Shown here one piece after another: positions 6,715 through 60,700 of a stretch of DNA of 64,000 bases. The notes beneath the pieces were generated by a model that was given only the letters and a program-made list of their open reading frames with translations, was not told the origin of the DNA and did no database searches. A program made the translations under genes and the position numbers. Source of the DNA: Camelus dromedarius (taxonomy: Eukaryota); assembly GCF_036321535.1 (NCBI RefSeq), contig NC_087436.1, positions 119,722,001 to 119,786,000 of the forward strand. The letters are read 5' to 3'. How positions within the stretch are numbered: position 1 is the first letter of the stretch; each line of letters starts with the position of its first letter.

Positions 6715-7060
6715 TTACAGATAAACATCTTACTCATTGCACAGATACTTGCACACCTACTGTGTGCTTGGCCCAGTGCTGAGGACTGAGTCAAAACTGC
6801 TTGTGGCAGTGGTAACACATGGAACGGTGGATGCATGATGGCTGTGGGAGCCCGGAGGAGGGACCCAGCCTGAGGGCCAGGGAGAGGCTTCTAAACCGAG
6901 ATCTGATGGATGAATAAGGAGTCGGCAGGGGGTGGGCTGGAGCAGGAGAGGGCTCCTGGGGGTGCTGGAGGCGGGCCAGCATGAACCCCGGCAGGATGGG
7001 CTCATGTAGGGCCTAAGAACCGGGTGGGGAGCCTGGGGCCAGTTGACTAAATGCTGAGCA
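6715..7060 (-). mobile_element. L2 fragment
   Basis: gcacacctactgtgtgcttggcccagtgctgagg followed by the L2-type gggagaggcttc...gagatctgatggatgaataaggag. Confidence 0.6.
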
Positions 7061-7620: not shown

Positions 7621-8334
7621 TCCTGAGTCCAAGACGGCCTGGCCCTCGGGGTGGCCCACCGGATGGACGGCACCTTCCTTTGAGGCCTGGGGCCTCTCCC
7701 CTGTGCTGGGGCTCCGTGATGGGAATGTGGGTCAGCAGAAGGCCCCTGGCACCTGGCTCCCAGCTCGGGTGCTACAGGTGGGCACTCCGTGGAGCTGCTC
7801 CAGTGAAGAAGAGCCCTCTTGCCCTCAGGAGTGGGCTTCTGGAGGCCTGTTCATGGCACGGGTGGAATTTGCACAGCTGGTTCCGACCAGCTCTGGGCGG
7901 AGGTACCTGGTGGGGGAGGGGTTCTCGGGCACACCTGGTGAGGATCCCACATCCGCCCACCAGCCCTACATGAGCCGTCTTGTGGGAGCCTCAGCCCTCT
8001 GGGCTCGGGGTGTGGAGTGGGGCCAAGTTGTTATTTCTGAGTTTTCCAGCACGCAAGGCTGCACGCGGCTCGCCTGTCTGGGGTAATTGATGCAGGCGGT
8101 GGTGGTGCTCAGGATGAAAGGTCAGGGCCGCCTAGTGTGACTGGCTGTCCGCTGTGGATTCTCTCCTGCTTCAGCCCTTATGGGAAATTAACCCCTCTGT
8201 CCCTGCCCGGGTCTTTGGTGTTGTAGGGTCTCGGGTTTCAGTGCTCTGGAATTTTTTGTCTGTACAAAGCTCAGGAGGCTAGGTTGGCATAAACATCCAA
8301 TGAATCCAAATAACAAACGTTGGAGGACCAGCCG

Positions 8335-8540
8335 TGTCTTCAGTAAGTAGGTACAGAGCACATACTGTGTGCCAGTCACTGCTAGGCTCTGGGGACATAG
8401 CAATGAATTGATCAGAAAAGGCCCTGCGCTCACAGGGCTGGTACCCTGGGGTGGGGGGCAGGCAGTAAACAGATAAGCATGATAAATACATAGTTTGTTA
8501 CATGACAGGGGCTTAGGAAGGGAACTCTGGAAAGAGTCGG
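8335..8540 (-). mobile_element. L2 3' end
   Basis: gagcacatactgtgtgccagtcactgctaggctctggggacatagcaatgaa...ccctgcgctcacagggct. Confidence 0.7.
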
Positions 8541-8790: not shown

Positions 8791-9254
8791 CTTACACCAG
8801 GGGATTGGGGTGGGGTGTTTCCTACAAGCATCTTGTCTTACTGGCTTATTCTCCCTCCTCGACCTGCCTCCCAAGGCTGGTACCCAGGATGGGAGAGAGT
8901 TTCATGCTGTAGTCTGCTTGGGGTTTAAGAGTTCGCTGGGAGTCTAAGTGTGTGTGCGGGAGCCTGGCAGTCTCCTGAAGGCAGCACAGAGCTCTTCCGC
9001 CCTCTCTCAGCCTTGTTCGTGGGGATGAACTCCAGCCGGGAGAGAAGGCTTTGTTTGCGCTGGCCCTGAAGCCAGCAGCTGAAAGTTGAGAAGGCTGGTG
9101 GGATGACGTGCTGCATAGAAGACACTTCTAGCCCAGACCTGGAGGCAGGAACAACGAATGCGTGTTCAGAAAGGCGTCCAGGCGGTTTGGTGTGAAGGAT
9201 GCAGGCAGGAAGGAGTCTGGTCCCGTGAGACACGTGACAGCAGCAGCAACCGTA

Positions 9255-9460
9255 ACCCCGTTTGCTGAGCACCTACTAAGCGCCACGCACTGGCTGGTCA
9301 CTGTGCATGTGGGTTTTATTTTGCCCTCAGGTGATCCTGCTGGGAGGTATTATCTACATCTTATAGACGGGGAAACTGAGGGTCAGGGAGGTGGGTCATT
9401 GAGGGTCATCCGACTAGGAGGTGGCTGAGCTGGGTTCTGTCCCCTGGTCACCTGGTTCCC
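9255..9460 (-). mobile_element. MIR, near full length
   Basis: tttgctgagcacctactaagcgcc...atcttatagacggggaaactgagggtcagggagg. Confidence 0.75.
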
Positions 9461-13460: not shown

Positions 13461-15599
13461 TGTTGGCCTAAGGGGTTAAGAGGGAGTCCTTGACTTGGAG
13501 GAAGTGGGTTCAGGCTCCCACACATGTGACTCTAAAACTGAAGGCAGGTGAGAAGGGCAGACTGTCAGGGTGGCTGGGAGGATCTGGGAAGGCTCCTGTG
13601 CAGGGGTGGTTGTGCCACAGCCCATCAAAGAGGGGCAGGCATGGTAACAGCTCAGTCTTGGGGGGAGTAGCTGGATTCCTGCCTCGGAATCCCATCACTC
13701 ACAAGAAGCCCACCGCCGGGGGCCCGGGGAGTGAGCCCTGTCCCTCCCGGTGTCCGGTCCTGGTCTGCTAGTTCCTATTTAATTCTCCCCCGAAGCCCCT
13801 TCTCCTCTCAGGATCGGATGATGTCCTTGAAGGTTGAAGAGACTGGAAAGCATCATTCAGCTTAAGTGCTTGTTGTTTGAAGGACGAGTGCCCGGGCACC
13901 AGGCTGGGTGGCTGGCTGGTGCCAGGAGATCCCGTCCTTGCCCCACAAAACAAACCCGTCTTGAGTTCCACTTGCCTTTTGGGGGGAAGGGATTAGGTTT
14001 ACTCCATCCCTGAGTTCCATTTGCTTTTAGAGGCAGCCTCAAAGTGAGGGCATGGGTGGGGGCACCAGGGCTTCAAAAGACACAGACTTGCCGTAGGTGA
14101 GTGTCAGCTACAAGAGCTGTCACCTTCCTCCCGAGCAGAGGAGTGGCCTTGTCCTTCCCTGGGCGTCGGCCTTTGTCCCCATTTGGTGACAGCGCAGTGC
14201 GATGGCTGAGCTTGAGACGTTACTGCTGTGAAGCAGACGCGTACGCTGGCCTCGGTGCAGGTCCTTCTCCTGGTCAAATTTGTCACCTGAGCTGCATCTC
14301 TGTCTGGGTCCATGTAGAACTGCTGTCAGTCACCTGAGAAGCACTGAGGCTCAGAGGCCCTGCTGCCCTGAGCTGGGTGCCGACATGGACCTCCCAGCTG
14401 GGCCCCAGGACCCCCGGCTGTGGGACGCAGTGCATGAGCTTGACCGGTACATCTGTCTGCTCTGCCTGTCATTGTGGGGCTGGGATCAGGGCGCAGACCG
14501 CAAGCTGGGCTGCAGGGCTCCCAGAACAGGCTGGTTTGGCATCAGAGGCTGCAGAGTCAGGTACCCACAGTCACCCCGTGCCTCCTCCCCAGGGCGTGAG
14601 ACACACGGACTCCTGTGTCTTCTGCCAGACACAAGGCCCAGCCCCCAGGAGAGTCACGTGCTGAGTGGCCGGGATTGGGGCTCTTGTGGTGGACGTGTCT
14701 TCCCAAACACGGAAGTCATGGTTCTCAGCAAAGGGTCTCCACTTTCTGGACAGGGAAGATCGGCTCCATGCAGCATGTGAGCTTGTGTCCTGTGGAGCTG
14801 AAAGCTGGACGGGAGCTCGGGGCTGTCCTCCAGGCCCCTCCACTTGGGTGTCACAAATGAACTGAGGCTCACGGAGGCCTCCTGGGCATGGGGCTCAGGA
14901 GGCCCCGAATGTGTGCGTCCTCTTCTGATCCTGGAAACCCCGGAGAGAGAAGTTAGCCCCCCATTCCACAGGGAGGAAACTGAGGCCTGGGAATCACCAC
15001 ACTCCCTATGCCGAGGCCTGACCCCAGCCACATTGACTTTTCCCCACCAGGCCCCTCTAGACCCTCCTGGCCGTGGCACCCGGGCAGACTGGTGATGACA
15101 GCGATGACAGACCAATGTCCTTGGCACTCTCTTGTCACCCTCCCAGCCTGGGACAGGAGGAGGCTGAAGTGTGGTCTCACTGGGCCTGGCCAGAGGCCAG
15201 CCGAGCTTCCGCGGGCCAGCGTCGGGCAGGAAGCGCCAGCCTGCGGAGGTGGAAGGGCAGGGCGGCGGGGCCGGAGGGTCTGGCACGGGGCCAGCTCGCT
15301 GCTCGTGAAGGGCCCCATTGATGGGTGGGCAGCGGGCGTCAGGATGCAGTGGCCTTCCTGCTGTCCCCTGGATCTCCGTGGTCGAGGGGCCTCCAGGCCT
15401 CCGCCCTGCTCACAGCTGCTTGGCAAGCATTCCCGGGGCTGCGTCACCCGACGTGGAGCCAGCAGTTCCCTGCTCCCGCTCCGATCGGGTTCACGGGAGA
15501 GCCGGCGGCCTGTGGGGCTGGGGGCTGCTCCGGTGTCCTGGGGCTGCGTTAGCAGCACCACCACTGTGGGTCAGGGTAACGGGGAGTCCATTCTCCATG

Positions 15600-15860
15600 G
15601 CCTGGGGGCTCTGGGAAGAACCCCTGCCTCCTCTGTCTGGCTTCCGTGGCCCTGGGCCGTCCTGGGCTTCCTCCCTGCATCTGTGTCCGAATGTCCTCTC
15701 CCTTCTCTGATAAGATGCCAGTCACAGGATTTAGGGCCCACCCTAACCGTGGCCTTATCTTAACTTGGTCACCTCTGCAAAGACCCCATTTACGAACAAG
15801 CTCATGTTCTGAGGTCCCGGGTGGACATGAACTTGGGGGCGCTGTTCAGCCCCTCACTCA
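15600..15860 (-). mobile_element. MLT1B/C-like LTR, partial
   Basis: cagtcacaggatttagggcccaccctaa...tctgcaaagaccccattt...gtggacatgaacttggggg. Confidence 0.75.
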
Positions 15861-16239
15861 CTCAGCTTCCAGGCGCAGCCGTGCTGCGGCTGCTCCCCCC
15901 ACCCCCAGAGCACTTTCTATTCCTGAACCACCCGTGGGCTCTCGCCTCCTCCCTCCTGTTGGCCCTTCGAGGCTCCGTCTTCAAGTGGCTTCCTCCTCAA
16001 ACCTGCTTTCTTTCCCAGGTGTGTGAGTGTTCCACTGTGTGAAGGCCCCTGGATCGCACTCTGGCCTCTCTGGGGCTGCTGACCACTCTGCTCTGTCGAA
16101 GGCGTGTGAGGGCTTCTTGTGTCTCCCTCTGGATCATGGGGTCCTGAGGGTGGGACTCCACCGTGACATTCTCCGTATCTTCCTTCTCCTCCCCATCCTC
16201 GGCGGCCCAGCACCTACTCTGTGCTGGGCATCGCAGCAG

Positions 16240-16400
16240 GCTTTTCACGCATGTTCCTTGTTGAATCCTCATGGCCACCCTAGGAGGCAGCTCTATTATC
16301 ATTCCCATTTTACAGATGAAGAAATTGAGGCTCTGAGAGGGTAAGTTACTTGCACAGAGGGATTGAAGCTACCTGGGTTTGACACTCAGATCTGTTCAAG
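16240..16400 (-). mobile_element. MIR
   Basis: gaatcctcatggccaccctaggagg...cccattttacagatgaagaaattgaggctctgagagggtaagttacttgc. Confidence 0.8.
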
Positions 16401-16464
16401 TCCATCAGAGGGTGATCCCTGTGGGCTGTCCTAGGACTGGCCCCAGGCAGACAGCCTGGAGTTG

Positions 16465-16720
16465 GTTCATTCCTTCAAAAATAGTTTTTCAAGTTCCTTC
16501 TATGTGCTCTGCGTTAGGGACCTAACAGGCTGCCAGCAGCCTCTATCCTAGCCTCATGGGCTTACAATCTGGGAAGACGGAAAGACAGACACCTTATCAT
16601 TAACCACAATGTGAAGGGCCCTGGTTTTACCACTGACCTCTCCTGTGACCTTGGCCAGGGGGTGGCCCCTCTGGGGACCTCAGTTTCCCCACATGTAGAC
16701 AAATGACCCCAACAGGCCCT
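16465..16720. mobile_element. L2 tip (antisense) followed by a MIR core (sense)
   Basis: ttcattccttcaaaaatagtttttc...; tgtgaccttggccag...cctcagtttcccc. Confidence 0.55.
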
Positions 16721-17436
16721 TCCAGCCTGAGAATGAGCCCTGCACGCCCAGCAGTCCTTTGCTCAGGGCAGGACCAGAGTCCTGCGTCCTGAGAGGCCCA
16801 GACAGACCACCGCTGGCCAGTGACAGCCGTCAGGTGGGGCGCGTTCTCCCCGCGTCCCTGGTGGACTTGGAAGGCCTCATGCCCAAAGGCCGAGGTGGAG
16901 CAGAACTGGCTTTTGAATCCCTCCGGGCCTGTGTCCCGGCTCTGGGAAAGAATCCGGAGGCCTTTCCAAGCCCTGTGACTCAGAGCTCCCCAGCGAGGCC
17001 GCCGGGTCCCACTCCAGCGAGACTCAGTGGGGACTTTGAGAGCCCTCCCTGCAGAGCTTGCCGGCAGTGTGGCTCGGCTGCAAAATAGGCCGTCTGTCCG
17101 CTGGAGCTAACGCTCGGCTCACCTGCGGAGACCCACGGGGGTCTGGGAGGCGAGGAAGTGGGATGAGTTTCGGGCAAAGCCAAATGTCAAAAGGAAAGCC
17201 TGCCACTCACCGAGGACAGCTCCTGCCAGCCACACGGAGCCATGTGGGGAATGGTTAGTGCCTGCACTGCTGGTCATGTGTGCAGCTGAGGGGCCATCTG
17301 GACACGGGGCCCCACCCTGAACATGGAATTTTAGCCTGCGGGAGAGCTCAGCTCACAGCCAGTTTTCTTTTGTGAAAAGCTCCCACCCAAATTCTTGTGC
17401 CAAACTCATTTCAGGAGGGAAGCAGGAAGAGGAGGA

Positions 17437-19125: not shown

Positions 19126-21479
19126 AGGGTCAAGGGCCTCCATCCTTCATCTGCTGTACACCTCCAGACCCTGCTGAGTGGACAGCAGGAGCCACACGTG
19201 ACATGGGGACACTGAGGCTCCAAAAGGGCAAGTGAGTTGCCAGAGATCTCACAGGAAGGGATGGGGTAGGGGCTGGAATGCGGGCTGGTTTCCAGTGTCC
19301 ACCCTCCAGCAGGCCGTCCCGAGAGTGGGTGCCCACCCAAGTCACCAGCGAGTCCGGGGGAGATGGGCAGCTGGGAGGCCCAGCTAAGGCTTTTCCCAGG
19401 GGAGAGCTGGGGGGAGGGGTTGAGGCTTCTTAATGAACGAACAGCCACAGGCTGGCTCAGGAAAAGCAGGAAGACAACCGTGTTTAATGAGCACCTACTG
19501 TGTGCCAGGCCCCTTGGGTATTACTTTGTTCATCCTTGTAACAGGAGCAGTATCTTTCTCTTGGCTCCTGCAGCGTTCAGCACACAGTAGGTGCTCAGGA
19601 AAGGTCACACTGACTTGGGGCATCTCTCAGCTGGGCCCAGGATGGCCAGAAGCACCTGCCGGATGTGGCCACAGCCCCAGAGACTCTCAGACGCTACATG
19701 TGCCTCTTGGCTTCTCTGAGGCTGTTTGCTCCCCAAGTACTGCCCCGGCACTCGCAGGCTCCCGCAGACAGAGGCTGTTTTCCCGATGAAATGTTGGTGT
19801 CTGCAGGAGAGCGGGTCGGCCGGCTCTCTCACTAACCTGCCTCCACTTGGGCTCAAGATGGGCTCAGAGGAGTTACATGGAGCCTTGAGAAATTGGCTTC
19901 CCCACCTGTCCCTGGCCCGGGCCCAGGGGATTTGAGTATGCACCTCGGTGATGTTGCATTGGCTCCCCAGGCTGGTACTTCCTCGAGGACCAGTTTCAGT
20001 CCTGAAAAGCGTCTGGAAGGACGTAGGGAGAGCCCACTGTGAAGGACTTAATCCTGACCCCTCCCACCAGGCCCAGCTGGACAGAGGCAGGTGGAAAAGT
20101 TGCACACTGTGGGCGGGGCCAGAACCTCCAACCAAGCACGCCGTCGTGAACAAACCTCATTGCCTAGCCCTTAGCCTCCTGGTTGCCAGTGGCCATCGTA
20201 GCCTCTGCCCTTGGCAGAGCGCGGGGGCAGGACCACCGGGAACGGGAGAGCTGGGGGAGTGGGGCCGGGAGGCAAGACGAGAAGGGGCTCTGGGCTCTGA
20301 TGTCCCTGGTTCAAGTCCCAGCATGGCCTGTCTCTCTATGCGGCCCTTGGACCAGACTCAGCGGCTCCATCAGTAAGACGGGGAGAGGGTCAGACTCAGG
20401 TGGCAGCCTGGCGCCGAGGGCAGGCGTGATGTGCTCCTGCGGAACGCGCCCCGGGCCGGGTAGTCCTGCGAGCTGTCGTCTTTCCCCCAGTGCGCTGTCC
20501 TGACTGTGGTCCTCACACCAGGACAGGAGGCTGGGGGACTGAGGTGGGCGAGGCCGTGCAGGCAGGAGGGCAGCTTGTCCCACGCCCCCCAGCCCAGGAC
20601 CCCCACCAGGGCTCCCGTTTCCGACTTGTGCTGGGTTTGGAAGGAGCAGCCGTGCAGGACCCTGCGCCCGTACCTGCTTCTGGCTGGCCTGTCAGCCTTC
20701 TCTGCCCATAACGGGGTGGAGCTAATTTAATGTCCGGGTCCCCCACCGCCCTCTGCTTAGTCTTTAATCTGACACGAAAGGAGGTCACCTGGCTGGCTGG
20801 CCTGCAGGGCCTGCTCGTTACCAATTCAGTTGCTGAAGGTGGAAAGTGAGTTCCGACACTCATTGCCAGCTTTCCTGAGTTGCAGGGCCTCTAACAGCCA
20901 GGTGCTGCTCCAGCCCAGGCAGGAAGTCCTCCTCTGCGCTGCTGGGGGCTGCTGGGACACCCGGGGGCCTGGGTGGGAGGCACTTCCTGGCCTGTGCAGG
21001 GCCTGGCACATGGTAGGGGCTGATCCTGGTCCTGGCCCAGCCTCCTCTTTCAAGATGGGGACCCCGAGGCCCAGGGTCGCACATGCACCCCCCACCCTGG
21101 GACTGAGGCAGGGCCGCCAACCCGTGTGCCTGTTTTTGCCTGAGACCCGCCTCCAGGGGGATCCAGTCTCCGCCTCTTAGCCCCCACCCTGCAGCCCTGG
21201 TTTCCCCACCAAAGACTCCAAGCCGGTTATTTCAAACCATCTGAAAGCAATAAGGAAGCAGCTTATGGATGAAATACCTTTAACATGAAGTTGTATCTTG
21301 CGGTCAGTGTTTCTTTCTGTCTAAACATTTCTCCTTGCTGAGCTGGGCTGGGGAAGGGGGCCTAGGAAACTGTTTCTCCGGCCTGAAAAACTCTCAGAGA
21401 GAAGCCAGCTCTGCGCCTCGTTGGGTGGGAAGCAGCAGGGTTGGTCTTGGAGCTGACAAGTTCCCCATCTCTGCCCCTT

Positions 21480-22102
21480 CCATCCGGCCTCCACACGGCC
21501 AAGGGGAGCTTCCTAAAACCAGAGCTGACCGGACACGGTCCAGGCTTCTCGGCTCCCTGCTGTTCTTGGATTGCTGTCTAAGGCCCCCCTCATCTTATTC
21601 CTACTGACAACTTGCCCCAGACCCGCCCCCCACTTGAGCAGGGTGACGCATCTGGGGCACAGGATGTAAGGAGGTCCTCACTCAGGGATGGTGCCTGAGA
21701 GCGAGGCTCTTCTCAGAGATTTCACCCTCACTTTCCTTGCCCCAGTCCCAGCCCTGTTCTTTCTCACCATCCTTCCCTCCCCACCCCTCCACTGCCCCTC
21801 CACTACAGGCATCCTAGGGTTCCTTTCACGCCCAGCCCTTTTCTGTGCTGGCTCCTTCACCTGGGATCCCTCCCCCCCTTTCCCTTAGCCAGTCATGACT
21901 CCTGTTCCTGATCCCCCAGACTCCACCCGGGGCCCACAGCCCCTAGGGGGCCCTGCCAGGCCCTCATCACACCCTCTAATTCTTTGTTGTCTGTCAAACC
22001 CTTGAGACTAAATTCTTTGAAGGCCCTGGCCATTGTGTTTATTGCTGTGTCCCCAGACCTGGAACAGGGCCTGGCACATAGTAGTTGCTCAAGAAATGTG
22101 TG
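21480..22102 (+). mobile_element. L2 3' region, fragmented
   Basis: cctccacacggcc...cttcctaaaaccagagctgacc; ends cctggcacatagtagttgctcaagaaatgtgtgttgga. Confidence 0.7.
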
Positions 22103-22305
22103 TTGGATGGATGGGTGGGTAAGTGGATAGACAGATGAATGGAAGGATGGTTGGATAGATGGATGGGGTTGGATGTGTGGATGGATGGATGAAGGGGTGG
22201 GTAGGTGGACAGATGGATGAATGGATGGATGGATGGTTGGATGTGTGGATGGTGGATGGATGGAAGGGTGGATAGATGGTTGGACGGGTGGGTGAGTGAT
22301 TGGAC
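22103..22305. repeat. Degenerate (GGAT)n array
   Basis: Repeated ggat/gggt/agat units, read directly. Confidence 0.95.
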
Positions 22306-25399: not shown

Positions 25400-25545
25400 T
25401 CGGGTGGGTGGGTCCCTGCAGATGTTGTGCAGCTGCCTTTGTACCCCACCTTGTAATTGGGTCCCTGCGAGGGTGTGAGCTCCCTGACTATAGCATGGAG
25501 CCTGGCACTGTGCCTATTGGTTGAATGAGTGAATGAATTCATTCA
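25400..25545 (+). mobile_element. L2 3' tip
   Basis: ggagcctggcactgtgcctattggttgaatgagtgaatgaa. Confidence 0.55.
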
Positions 25546-26679
25546 AGCTGACCTGTCTAACCCGTGCTGAACAGGGACTATGAGGCCACCTGGTCCAGGT
25601 GCCTCTGAACTGGTGTGGAAGCTGAGGCCTAGGGTCACCCAGGGGGCTGAGGGGGAGCCAGATGGGAGGCTCTGGGGCTCCCCGTCCAGTGTTCTTTCTG
25701 TAACACTTTCCTGCCACCCCCCCCCCCCGCGCTTCTGTCCCCATCCCTCAGTTAGCACATGAAACGTTCATGCCCTCACTTATTCTTTAAAAATTCATTT
25801 GGAAATATTTTATGCAGCGCCTCAATCGCAGTTGGAAACCATTTATTTAATCCCAGGCGGCAGGACACCAGACAGCGGAGGTGATTGGTTACAACGCCTG
25901 GGGCTGCGCAGCCTGTTCCGGAGCTGCTGCCCGGGGGCGGGCAAGGCTCCCGTGAGGGGTTGGAGATGTGGGGTCTGCCGTTCCTGTGAAGGCACGTGGC
26001 CCCTGTGGCCCCTGTGGCCCCGCAGCCGGTCCCACAGCAGGAGCTGTTGCCTCCACGGTAAATACACGGGGACCCACGAGGCTGGATGCGCTTCTGCAGG
26101 GCAGAGTCTGCAGGGCAGAGTCTGCCGGGGGCACCGAAACCCCCCTGCCCCACCCCACGCCAGGATGCGCTCGTCCTTCTGTCCTGTCCAGAAATTCATG
26201 AAGATCCTGCCTGAGAGGGGCCTCCCGGCTCCCCTCTTCCCAGCAGGTTGGACTTTGTGACTTCTGCCTCGAGGCTGGGCGGCAGATCTACACTCCTGGG
26301 ACCCCATAGTCCGTAAGAATCCAGGCCAGGACTCGAACTTGGGCCTGTGTGAGCGCTAAGCCTCCATAGCTCTGCCTCCTTGGGCCTGTGAACATGCCGC
26401 CCGATGTCGTGGAGGTCGGGGAGGCTGGGCTGGGGTGGTTTGCCTGGACTGCGTGGTTCTCAGGATGTGGAGCATCCGGTACTAAAGCCGGAGTGGTCCC
26501 AGGCGGCAGGGGCAGGGGCAGGGGCAGGGCTCCTGCACCTCCTCGTGTCTGTGGGGGAAGCCCGGAGCTCAGCCTGCACCTGCCCTGAGAGACGCCGGGC
26601 TCCTCCCTTCGGGACCTTTCTCGCACCGGGTTTCCTGAATCCGCTCGGTCTCCGCTGGGCCCCTCCCTTGCTGCTGGTC

Positions 26680-26959
26680 TGAAGGTGAATCTTTTTTTTT
26701 CTTCTTCATTGTCCCACTTTATTTCTCAGTTAAGCCCGACTCAACGGGAGCATTTTGAGGACAGGAACTGTTCTACATTTGAATCATTGGTGCAGAAAAA
26801 TAATTTCTTTTTATTTTTTTATTGAGTTATAGTCAGTTTACAATGTTGTGTCAGTTTCTGGTGCACAGCACAATTCTTCAGTCACACATGAACATACACA
26901 TATTTGTTTTCAGATTCTTTTCTGCCATGAGCTACTACAAGATATTGAAGGTGAATCTT
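26680..26959 (-). mobile_element. 5'-truncated lineage-specific L1 (camelid-like 3' end) with 3'-transduced flank and 14-bp TSD
   Basis: TGAAGGTGAATCTT at 26680-26693 and 26946-26959; T-tract 26692-26700; antisense AATAAA 26718-26723; internal tail 26804-26820; L1 3' UTR attgagttatagtcagtttacaatgttgtg...caagatattgaa. Confidence 0.85.
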
Positions 26960-28299
26960 CTGATGAGACAGATGTGCTTGTTCCTCTGCAGCCTGGTGCT
27001 CAGACACGTGGTATCCCACACCGTTCCCCTCCAGCACCAAGGGTGCAACTCCCCGGGACCTGGGTGCAGGTCCAACTCAGAGCCAGAAATGAGGCCAGAA
27101 GCAAGGTGAGGGAGAGGTGGATGTGTCCCTCAGCAGGAAACATGGGGTCCCATGGGCATTCAGTGACACTCCCTGGTCCCATCATGAGCTCAGGACCAGC
27201 TGTGAAATAAGACACAGGAGGCAAACATCAGAGATCACGTGACTGCTTTATTGTTGTCTTGGGAGACTGGGACGATGCAGTTTTAGGGCTGTAGCCAAGA
27301 GGAAGAGCTCAGTCTCTCAGCCCTGTCACTGTTCAAGCACGGCCCTTCTCCCTCCGGCACTGCCAGAGCAGCTGGAACAAACCCAGCCTGCAGGCCACAG
27401 CCACAAGCAGCAAAGGAAGCATGAGGAGCAAGGAGGAAGTGGTCCCACCTCTCAGAAAGGAACGTTATGCAAAGCCTGGGAGGATGGTCCTGTTGACTAC
27501 TGGGTCACAGTCCCTGGCTCCTTGCCTGACCCAGCATCTCTGTGCAGGAGTGCTTGCTGAATGGAGGCACTGTGAGTGTCCCTCCCCCTCTGCCTGTCCA
27601 AGGCCCAGCTCCAAGAAGGCCCTTCCTCCAGGAAGCCTTTCTGGTCCTGCAGAGAGTTCTGTGTTTGGGCATGGCTCACTATGACTTTGAGAAAGCTTTC
27701 TCTGGGTTGAGAATGGGGGAGCCAAGTCGTCTGTGGCCAAAGCATTATGATCCAAAGCTTGTTGTTCCAGGGGGGTCTCTCGGGGGTGCCTCCTGTTCAG
27801 TTGTCCAGGCTGCTCCACCTGCAGACTGGGCTGTTTCAACAGGTCCCTGAACTCAGAAGGGCTCTGCACTTGGGGGGCCACACTTGGGATGGCCTTGCTT
27901 TTAGTTTACACTGCTGTTTCTCATCTTGACTTTCTTAATTGTTTTTTTTATCAGGAGGCCCTGCATTTTCATTGTGCACTTGGCCTCATGAATTGTGCAG
28001 CCGGCCCTAGATGGCTCCGATGGGGACGGATAACTGCCTTCATTTCTTGGCCTTCACTCAATGAACAAGAGTTGTTCGGTGCAGTGTGCGGTGGGGACAC
28101 ATGGAGGGGGCCGTCTTGCAGACCAGGATGTGACCTTGTGTCCTTGGAGATGCAGCTCTGAAGTGGAGGTGTGGGGTGCCCTGCAGGGACCCCGGCCCAG
28201 CCAGCTTGGGGTTCCTGAGCTCAGGATTTGGAGCAGGTCTTGCGAGACTTTTCTCATTCTCCCTCCCCCAGACTTCCCTCTCTGCAGGATTTCCAAAGC

Positions 28300-32400: not shown

Positions 32401-32839
32401 CATGAGGAATATTTCATTAATATTGGTTATTATTATTTTATTGTTTCTGTCATGCAGCACTATCTTCACCCACAAACATGTGAAAAAAATTAGTGCTTGA
32501 GGACAGCTATGACCCAGCCCATCTTGGTGCCACGTAAATGCTTCTTGAACAGAATTGAGTCAGGCTAAAGCCTTTGCCCCGAGGGAAGCTGTCAGGGCAG
32601 CTCCTCCAGGTCTCCTGTGTTTGGGATCACTCTGGGTCACCTGTCTGAGGTGGGGCACCTGCCCTTGTCTCCCCCACCCTCTCTTTCAATTTGACTTGTC
32701 ACTAGCATGTGCGTTGATTCACCCATCTGTCTCTTTGCATGTGGTGTCCTTGGCAACCGTGGGTCCATTTACAGTGGACTTCCCATGTGCCCGCCTTATA
32801 CTGGCTGTTGAGGATGTGATGGTGAATGAGAATAAAATG

Positions 32840-33035
32840 CACCTCTATGTGCCAGGCTTTCTGCTGGGCCTTCTATGCACCTCTTTCAGCCTCACAAGAG
32901 TCCCATGTAATGGGGATTCCTGCAGCCCTTTGCAGATGAGGAGCTCAAGGCCCAGGGAGGGTCAGCATTTTGCCCAAGGTCACACAGCACCTACGGGACG
33001 AACTGACAGACTTACCTGAATGGTTCCAAATCCCA
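32840..33035. mobile_element. MIR (antisense) with an adjoining MIR head
   Basis: ctatgtgccaggc...ttgcagatgaggagctcaaggcccagggagg...tgcccaaggtcacacagc; gacagact...ttccaaatccc. Confidence 0.7.
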
Positions 33036-47258: not shown

Positions 47259-47735
47259 CACCATCATCCCCACCACCACCGTCATCCCCACCATCACAAT
47301 CACCGCCGTTATCAACATCAGCACAATCATCACCACCATCCTCATCACATCTTAATCACCACCATCATCACCATCTATATCACCATCCTCAGCCTCATCA
47401 CCATTAACATCACCACCAATATCACAGTCACCACCACCATCATCACCATCAGCATCACCCTCATCATCACCCCCACCACTACTGTCATTACCATCCTCAT
47501 CNNNNNNNNNNNNNNNNNNNNNNNNNNNNNNNNNNNNNNNNNNNNNNNNNNNNNNNNNNNNNNNNNNNNNNNNNNNNNNNNNNNNNNNNNNNNNNNNNNN
47601 NNNNNNNNNNNNNNNNNNNNNNNNNNNNNNNNNNNNNNNNNNNNNNNNNNNNCCTCATCGTCATCACTGTCACCGTCTTAATCACCCCCACCCCCCAAAT
47701 CTTCATAATCACCCCCACCACCACCTGCATAACTT
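47259..47735. repeat. Degenerate (CAC/CAT)n trinucleotide array containing the gap
   Basis: Repeated cac/cat units on both sides of the N run. Confidence 0.95.
47502..47652. other. Assembly gap (151 N)
   Basis: Run of N characters. Confidence 1.
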
Positions 47736-57740: not shown

Positions 57741-60700
57741 CCCTGACGATTTGTGGACTCTTCTAAGCAGAGGCAGGGGACTCACTAGAAAGACGTCACT
57801 TTGTTTGCAGGATTTATACTAAGACCTCTGTGAATGTCCTACATTCATTTAGGCTGTGGCATGCTTAGAAAACATGGTGAAGACAGCTGGAGAAATTTGC
57901 TTTTTAGAAACCACCAAATGTTATTTTAAAAATGCTTTTCTTAAAATACTTAGTCTCAGACGTTCAAAGCACGACTGTGATGATTTGCCTCTTCCTGGGC
58001 CCGGTCCCCCTCCCCAGTCTGCTGGCAACCTTTCCCCCTCCAGCTGCCCAGAGCCCGGCTGGGGACAGGATTGGAGATGTGGGACATTGCCAGTCCCAGG
58101 CCCCCGAAGGTTTCTCAGCAGCAGCGACTTCCAAAGTGTGAGTGTCCAGGACTGCCCAGGGAAGCAGTTTCTGGCGACGTCACCAGGAGAATCTCCTTCC
58201 AAGGGGCATAGTCTTCCAGAGGCCGCCCCGGTTATGAGTTCTTGGGTGCCAGATAAGGGCCGACGAGGCCAGGGTCACTGTTCTCAAAGACATGCTCAAC
58301 ACCAGCCGGAGATTTGGGACTTAACCTGAGCCTCCACGCAAGCCCGGCTCCATTTGAAGAGAGTCATTGCCCACGAATACAAATCTCGCCTGTGAGCTCC
58401 CCCAGCTTTTTGGCTTCACAGAAATAGCACTCACAGAGGATGGGCTTTTGTTGTCAGTCTGGTTTTACAGAAGCTGAAGCTGCTGAGGCCTGTCAGCAGT
58501 CTCACTGGTGTTTCCTGTCCTGCTGGAGTTGCGTTGGTGAGGTAGTGAGCTCCCCGGGGCTGTGGTGAGGATGCTGAGTGGGGCAGGGATTCTGCACTTG
58601 GAGAAGCTGGGTGTCTTCCAAAGTGTGGAATTTCTGCTGCCGAGGAGGGACGAGGACAGGTGTGCCGAGTGACCCTGGAGGCCTGGAAGGGGATGGCAGG
58701 CCTCTTTCTGTCTTCCCCATCCTGATCGTAGGGGAGTGGCTTGGCTTCTGGCGAGCACGCCCCTGACAGCTGAAGCGAGGGCAGGCCCAGGGCCCTGGCT
58801 TATCTTGGGTAAACCACACGCAGAAGGAGAGAACGCATCATTTGCGTTGTTTGTGCTGCGGTTAGCGTCCGCTGACTTCCACATCAGTCATGCTCACTTT
58901 TCTGTTTATGGAAGTGGTGTCAAAGTTTCCTGATGACGTCACAGAAGTGGGGTGGTTTAAGACAATTTACTAAGGTGCCCCGAGTGGGCGGTTCCGGTAC
59001 TGCCGTTGCACGTGGCCCCTGAATGGTCAGACGTGGGTTTCTTGAACCGCGTGGCTGCCTGATGCTGATGGGGATTCCTGGCCCTGTTTGGATGGGACAG
59101 GGTGGCCACCTTGACCTGAGGCCCAGCTGAGAGAGTGTTGGCACAGGGACTCTGAGAGAGACACGGAGCCCGGAGCCGGGACGTGAGCCCCGAGGGAGCA
59201 GGCGATGCTCAAAGCCATCGGGCGCTAGGGGCAGCCTCTCCACGGAGGATGCCAAAGGCCTCCCCACGGCAGCTGCACCTGAAAGATCCCCTTTTAGCAG
59301 AAGGCCCACTTGCCCACAGCCATCTTCCTCGTCCTCCTCCCTGGTGAAGGCTGATTCCCCCACAAGAGTGGCAGCTCTGGCGGAGGGTGGGTGAGTGAGA
59401 GGGGTCTGGATGCAAAAGGAAGCCAGCCTCCGGCTGCCCCCACCCTTTCTTAGGCAAAGTGTGATTTAAACCATCTTTGAAAGCGTGCCCCAGTACAGGG
59501 ACACTCGTAGCTCTAAGTCTCCCGAGATGTCCTGATGGGCGGCACAGGGTCATCCCCGCCCTCTTCTGCCGCGACAGCACCAGCTCTGGCCTGCAGCCAC
59601 CTGCAGCTGGAGGACCTACTGTGTGCCAAGCGCCGGGGCGGCAGGATGGGCAAACCCTTGGTCCCGGTTCCCCAGGAGGGACGGCCCCCGCAGGGACCTG
59701 TCGGAGGAGGCAGGATGCCACGCAGTCAGCAGTGATGATGAGGAACAGACTGCCTTCACAGCACCGGCCCCTCCCGATGCCAGAGCTGTGGGCACCACGC
59801 CCACCCGGGGGGAGGAAGCATGCTGGGGAACGAGGGTAGGATGCGAGGGTGAAAGTGACTCAGGTCACAAGACTCGGCATCACCGGGAAAGCCTGAGACA
59901 GGAGAGGCCCCGAGGCCTCTGGAGGACCCTGAAGGGTGGGTGGCGTCATGTGGGTTGGAAGAAGCATTTCAGGGCCAGGAGTGGGGTGAGCCAGGCCCCC
60001 AAAGCAGGGCAAAGCTGGTGCCTGGAGCTGAGTGCAGGAGTGATGGGGGTCTTGGTCCCGCAGACCTTGTCTGCCAGGAAGGGGTCCAGGCAGTGGGAGG
60101 CTGGGGGGAGGAAGGGGTGCCCATGCCTGGGAGTGGGCCTCACCATCCTCATTTGCATTCATGTAGCATCACTGGTTGTGAAGTGAGTTCCCCAGTGACA
60201 TCTCCAGGCTGTGCCCACATCTGTTGGCCCAGTGAGGCAGAGACCAGGCCCCTCAGATAGGGCCCCGAGACTGGTCAAGGCCACGAGAGGAGCTTGAAAC
60301 CGATCTCCTGTCCACCCCGCCGGGCAAATGGAAAGGGCTTATTGGTCCCGTAGACTGACTGGGTCTCAGACTGGTCTGTAGATCCTGAAATAGGGTGGAA
60401 AACTGTGCCCATGTGCCTGGATGTTTATAGCTGTCCTGAGCTCTTTAACAGGGGCCTCCTCCAGAGGAGATGTCAAAGTCACCGTCCTTTAGGTGAGAGG
60501 GCAGGTATCACTGACCGTTTGCACTTGGGACCCAGTGTGCAGTCACTGCGGGGGGTCAGACTGCAGGTCTGGAGGGTGGGCTGGGGTGCTGCCCAGGGGT
60601 CCAGGGAGGGAGGAGGGAGGGGGCTGGGCTCTGGTGGGCAGGTGGGAGTCTCCTGCAGACATAGGGCTCTGTGCCAGAGACATTTAAAGACCCACAAAAA

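Follow-up and report, generated by a model that had tools for sequence, protein, structure and literature searches.

We have found that a window of 64,000 nt from the genome of Camelus dromedarius (NC_087436.1), which is the whole stretch of DNA analysed here, contains a retrotransposon insert made up of the last ~140 bases of an L1 followed by ~100 bases of unrelated single-copy DNA. The most probable explanation of its anatomy, to which we give a probability of about 0.78, is that the insert arose in one target-primed reverse transcription event from a read-through L1 transcript, that is, by a partnered 3' transduction. An L1 terminus with its signal and A tract lies directly upstream of the unique DNA and the whole is enclosed by one target-site duplication (TSD), which is the arrangement by which a partnered 3' transduction is defined structurally. 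The repeat, the signals, the tails and the boundaries between the parts can be seen directly, as can the fact that the non-L1 piece (the tag) is single-copy and that every run examined carries the insertion.

Layout of the insert

The insert measures 252 bp between the two repeat copies and has a GC content of 0.34, and the flanks have 0.68 and 0.55. Read on the minus strand, which is the sense of the element, the flank ending ...catcag is followed by AAGATTCACCTTCA (26959–26946), the L1 end, the A tract, the 103-nt tag, the A run, AAGATTCACCTTCA again (26693–26680) and the flank beginning gaccag... (Table 1). All of the features listed in the preliminary description of this DNA were found, on inspection of the sequence, at the positions that it had given them. 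BLAST searches of the 64-kb window located two exact copies of TGAAGGTGAATCTT and no more, and detected neither the L1 part nor the tag at any other place.

Table 1 Features of the insert and MIR/L2-type 3' ends in the window (positions are those of the 64,000-nt window)
Feature	Position	Strand	Basis or remark
TSD, element 3' side	26680..26693		TGAAGGTGAATCTT on the + strand; repeat search, 100% identity
Terminal poly(A) remnant	26694..26700	-	A7 outside the TSD; A9 with the first two A of the TSD
Non-L1, non-repeated piece (tag), putative transduced 3' flank of the source L1	26701..26803	-	103 bp, GC 0.40; contig depth
Second AATAAA, separated by 17 nt from the terminal A run	26718..26723	-	Sequence
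Internal A-rich tract AAAATAAAAAGAAA, read as the genomic A-tail of the source L1 within the read-through RNA	26804..26817	-	Sequence and contig ends
The L1's own AATAAA, read as bypassed by the read-through transcript	26818..26823	-	Sequence
5'-truncated end of the L1 3' UTR, ~122 nt upstream of its AATAAA, ending ...ACAACATTGTAAACTGACTATAACTC	26824..26945	-	Contig copy number; L1 name from the conserved laurasiatherian terminus
TSD, element 5' side; 26946–26949 (TGAA on +) probably common to the L1 sequence	26946..26959		Sequence, repeat search
MIR/L2-type 3' ends	19440-19575, 32789-32926, 8324-8444, 9248-9358, 6721-6844, 16175-16297, 2572-2698, 59576-59694	-	GCCTGGCACAnAGTAGG core
MIR/L2-type 3' ends	22005-22105, 20949-21052	+	GCCTGGCACAnAGTAGG core

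Target-site duplication and junctions

The direct repeat is identical at 14 of 14 positions in its two copies and encloses the L1 part, the tag and the tail. An exact direct repeat of at least 14 nt occurred in one of 1000 dinucleotide-preserving shuffles of 26500–27150, a figure that leaves aside the further circumstance that the two copies abut the A run and the 5' end of the L1. The nick site reconstructed on the + strand is ...AATCTT/CTGATG; compared with the L1 endonuclease consensus TTTT/AA, the pyrimidine half of TCTT/CT matches and the purine half is absent.

Of the pieces from other L1 copies that were listed, these being the longest ones, about half extend their alignment over the 5' junction to 26948–26949, which is 3–4 nt inside the repeat. 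Thus, the microhomology of TGAA proposed earlier for this junction is plausible and has moderate support, the pieces from other copies among these longest ones reaching 26947–26949, and the four bases 26946–26949 are probably common to the TSD and the L1 sequence.

Presence of the insertion in public read contigs

An index search with 26380–27260 as the query returned 20 runs from 7 studies under two organism labels, and every one of the 20 holds 0.99 of the sampled words of the query. Fourteen of these runs are marked as possible sources of the assembly; studies P6 and P7 are not so marked. The Logan contigs of four runs, X1, X9, X14 (organism B) and X17 (independent study), amounting to ~1.9–2.1 Gb each, were aligned to the stretch at a likeness of at least 80%. 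In all four, one contig spans 26380–26833 and another spans 26866/26869–27260, each with 0 differences, and the gap between the two locus contigs falls within the most repeated core of the element.

The insertion had been described as possibly polymorphic. This is not borne out by the 20 runs of 7 studies, all at 0.99 of the words, or by the Logan contigs of the four runs, in which no empty allele was seen and no contig joins across the insert. Contigs are apparently cut at 26496–26540 in one of the runs. GC-rich short tandem repeats are found near the insertion at 25996–26021 (9 bp × 2.9), 26093–26129 (14 bp × 2.6) and 26500–26529 (CAGGGG × 4.8).

The L1 part

Contigs matching the stretch at 80% or more number 13,680–17,409 per run and all of them fall within ~26800–26949 in the four runs. 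The summed word depth over 26800–26949 lies between 1e4 and 2e6 and falls with distance from the 3' end, as expected for 5'-truncated LINE copies. The best-supported loose ends of the contigs are at 26808–26815, where hundreds of other copies leave the sequence of the insert and run on as T runs on the + strand, that is, as A-tails. These ends place the boundary between L1 and non-L1 sequence where it had been put in the preliminary description.

At ~7 of 140 places the L1 part has a letter other than the commonest one of its family. We take this abundant family to be L1, an identification based on its copy number, its 3' anchoring and the conserved 3' terminus of laurasiatherian L1. At 26853 and 26870, hundreds of other L1 copies diverge from the copy in the insert into sequence containing TA repeats, indicating that the 3' UTR in the insert is of one of the less common types within the family. 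A degenerate pattern of the L1 core had 0 matches in viral_contigs and a 16-mer of the core had 0 matches in paper texts; PMC5203782 contains nothing on camelids.

The tag

The depth in the bin 26740–26769 is that of the locus's own contig alone in all four runs (8.1, 39.4, 11.4 and 10.6), which means that the tag belongs to no repeat family. Nearer the terminal A run there is a small excess of depth over the own contig, again in all four runs, of ~1–1.6 single-copy equivalents in 26680–26709 and ~0.1–0.5 in 26710–26739. This excess probably comes from low-complexity matches to polypyrimidine sequence.

The tag had been said to contain an L2-like piece, and a derivation from L2 or MIR was therefore tested. 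Eleven MIR/L2-type 3' ends were picked from the window by short motifs, and the insert was also searched alone with all filters off. A profile of these 11 ends recovers its own copies with E values of 1e-7 to 1e-17 and misses the tag, and the best local alignment of the tag to them has a score of 16 against a shuffle mean of 18.8. The label is thus not supported by any similarity to the 11 ends above that of shuffled controls, a very decayed relation lying beyond the reach of the test.

About ten decayed MIR/L2-type 3' ends with the GCCTGGCACAnAGTAGG core are present in the window, 8 of the 10 on the minus strand (Table 1). An old L2-type terminus is found at 25454–25536 on the + strand (25430–25545 as used in the comparisons), 1.1 kb from the insertion, and ends GAATGAGTGAATGAA. 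An nhmmer search seeded with this terminus recovered the terminus itself alone, with no detectable likeness to the tag.

Poly(A) signals and A tails

The pure A run at the end of the insert extends from 26700 to 26692 (9 A), its last two A overlapping the repeat as drawn, and is the only run of at least 9 A on the minus strand of the window. The terminal A9 reported earlier is thus present as a run; outside the TSD the tail amounts to A7, or to 13 nt if the preceding AAGAAG is included. The second AATAAA (26723–26718) is followed by 17 nt (26717–26701) and then by the A run. In shuffled sequence, an AATAAA 10–30 nt before an A run has a chance of ~0.018. The second AATAAA, so placed, marks the genuine 3' end of a polyadenylated pol II transcript, and is the putative poly(A) signal used by the retrotransposed RNA.

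The AATAAA of the L1 itself (26823–26818) is followed by AAAATAAAAAGAAA (26817–26804). This internal A tract has two interruptions (T and G) and the terminal A run is pure, which, the numbers being small, would fit an older genomic tail copied from the source.

Search for a second copy of the tag

Even where an L1 allele at a source has been lost, its flank should persist, and the tag is therefore expected to occur a second time under every RNA-mediated model. The preliminary description had gone further, in that the tag was to point to the source L1 at another place in the genome. Among the Logan contigs of the four runs, none but the locus's own matched the middle of the tag at 80% identity or more, and a second copy was not found at this level. 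The negative is a weak one, since contigs resembling human DNA had been filtered from these sets, but it leaves standing the refuting condition of the preliminary description, the lack of a donor copy beside an L1. Two exact 24–25-mers of the tag had 0 matches in JGI metagenome contigs, as expected.

Great age is an unlikely excuse for the unseen donor, given that the TSD is intact and that the L1 part lies so close to its family; a perfect 14-bp TSD is compatible with a pairwise divergence of up to ~20%. Most likely the donor is unseen for a technical reason, the dropping of contigs that resemble human DNA. It is unlikely that camel genomes truly have only this one copy of the tag, the L1 at the source and its flank having been deleted or never fixed, and still less likely that the tag was derived from a non-genomic polyadenylated RNA. 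If the source has been lost, the insertion, itself dead, would preserve in an "orphaned" transduction tag ~100 bp of DNA that survive nowhere else; a tag for which no source can be detected would be a hint that the donor region disappeared later. The missing donor weighs equally on all of the RNA-mediated explanations considered below and so lowers our confidence in the transduction only modestly.

Genomic context

The whole window has, on the + strand, a GC skew of + 0.037 (G > C) and an AT skew of − 0.088 (T > A), and AATAAA occurs 13 times on the + strand and 38 times on the minus strand. This composition suggests a transcription unit on the + strand, and would fit a single long one from whose sense strand poly(A) signals have been purged; the element would lie antisense to the unit. 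Antisense is the usual tolerated orientation for such elements. The two AATAAA of the insert are on the strand opposite the probable host unit and no effect on the host is therefore expected; a function of the element itself is not evident. In searches for the gene context of the window, Rfam gave 0 matches and the 10 longest ORFs were without a Pfam family. The stretch 47502–47652 consists of 151 N and is an assembly gap or a masked stretch.

Origin of the insert

We infer a read-through origin and a source locus from the arrangement of the parts. Transcription of a source L1 would have run on beyond the weak AATAAA of that L1 and its A-tail in the genome and taken in ~100 nt of the host DNA further downstream, and the RNA would have been cleaved and polyadenylated ~17 nt beyond the second AATAAA. 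The L1 ORF2p would then have nicked the + strand after ...AATCTT, the T-rich 3'-OH priming on the poly(A). Reverse transcription would have copied the tag, then the old A-tail and then the last ~125–140 nt of the L1 before it stopped, giving the 5' truncation. The end of the cDNA may have joined the target via a microhomology of 4 nt (TTCA in the sense of the element), and a staggered second nick would have produced a target-site duplication of 10–14 bp.

In a published survey (PMC13009371), ~25% of L1 insertions carry transductions, two poly(A) tails are typical of partnered ones, a poly(A) signal lies 10–30 bp before 79% of the transduction endpoints and 71% of the transductions are shorter than 100 bp. 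Against a transduction count the half-canonical nick site TCTT/CT, the unseen donor, which is weak evidence, and the possibility that the repeated part belongs to a poly(A) retroposon family other than L1. The central proposal of the preliminary description, an L1 read-through 3' transduction, fits the anatomy and is retained as the best reading, without the predicted source, the L2-like label and the polymorphism, which were not upheld.

L1 proteins prefer their own mRNA in cis, so that an L1-derived transcript is the likeliest RNA with an L1 3' end, and trans-mobilised cellular RNAs are far rarer than the transcripts of L1 itself. This makes it very unlikely that the insert is a 5'-truncated retrocopy, trans-mobilised by L1, of a polyadenylated host transcript whose poly(A) site lay ~100 nt beyond an old 3' fragment of L1 within it, even though such a retrocopy is predicted to have an identical structure of TSD, poly(A) signal and A run. 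An L1 3' end would, moreover, have to be present by chance in the final 250 nt of such a transcript, and a parent copy is likewise not found in the contigs of the four runs. We include in the same small probability an orphan transduction, in which the L1 piece would have been supplied by a truncated L1 situated 3' of the true source; orphan transductions ending at the poly(A) signal of such a truncated L1 are described in PMC13009371.

The presence of two RNA-derived parts in the same orientation within one TSD pair, each with an AATAAA and an A tract, would also be expected if reverse transcription had started on the poly(A) of an unrelated cellular RNA, copied ~103 nt, then switched to an L1 RNA at its poly(A) end and gone on for another ~140 nt. 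Chimeric retrocopies of this kind are a known class, but one much rarer than transductions, and the enzyme would have had to land exactly where the L1 tail ends on its 3' side. Being short and interrupted, the internal A tract resembles an aged genomic tail rather than one newly added to an RNA. The parent 3' UTR would be expected to provide a second copy of the tag and none was seen in the contigs of the four runs, though the filter for likeness to human DNA could remove a conserved UTR. On these grounds a template switch appears less probable still than the copying of a host transcript.

Least probable of all are two successive insertions, in which a 5'-truncated L1 would have arrived alone, its tail very short and its TSD that of 14 bp, and a 103-nt retrocopy would later have entered this tail. 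The 7-nt AAAAAGA on both sides of the tag (26812–26806 and 26696–26690) is a candidate inner duplication and the implied inner nick TTTT/AT is a good endonuclease site. However, AAAAAGA, the only word found on both sides, is A-run sequence that is expected by chance, two events would be needed, the second a rare retrocopy of unique sequence into a target of ~10 nt, and the second insert would be left with only ~4 A of tail.

Comparison with known systems

Partnered L1 3' transduction by read-through of the L1 poly(A) signal has been described for human L1 from 1999–2000 onwards. It is a textbook by-product of the weakness of this signal and accompanies roughly a tenth to a quarter of L1 insertions. 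The camel insert resembles these events in having an L1 3' end with AATAAA and an A tract, then unique DNA with a second AATAAA 10–30 nt before a second A tail, a single TSD enclosing the whole, a 5' truncation and a tag of the typical length of ~100 bp. It differs from them in the half-canonical nick (TCTT/CT) and in that a search of the four contig sets did not reveal the source locus, by which such events are normally confirmed.

A close parallel to a tag without a visible source is provided by the "proxy elements" of PMC13009371, truncated L1s of the reference that carry a transduced tag while their source L1 is absent from it. The camel insert likewise combines a truncated L1 and a tag with no source L1 in view. 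The human sources, however, are non-reference, polymorphic L1s, whereas in camel the flank that gave the tag was itself not seen a second time, perhaps as an artefact of the filtering.

The insert is also like the template-switch chimeras of the U6/L1 type, in which two RNA-derived segments are fused head to tail with one TSD pair and a 3' poly(A). In those chimeras, however, the segment on the 5' side is usually derived from a small RNA, with no poly(A) signal and tail between the two segments, whereas the insert has in this place an entire L1 3' terminus that brings its own signal and an A tract of aged appearance. We therefore regard the insert as a real, cleanly delimited and ordinary example of the well-known L1 3' transduction, whose tag is useful as a lineage marker, both for scoring presence and absence among camelids and for tracing active L1 loci.
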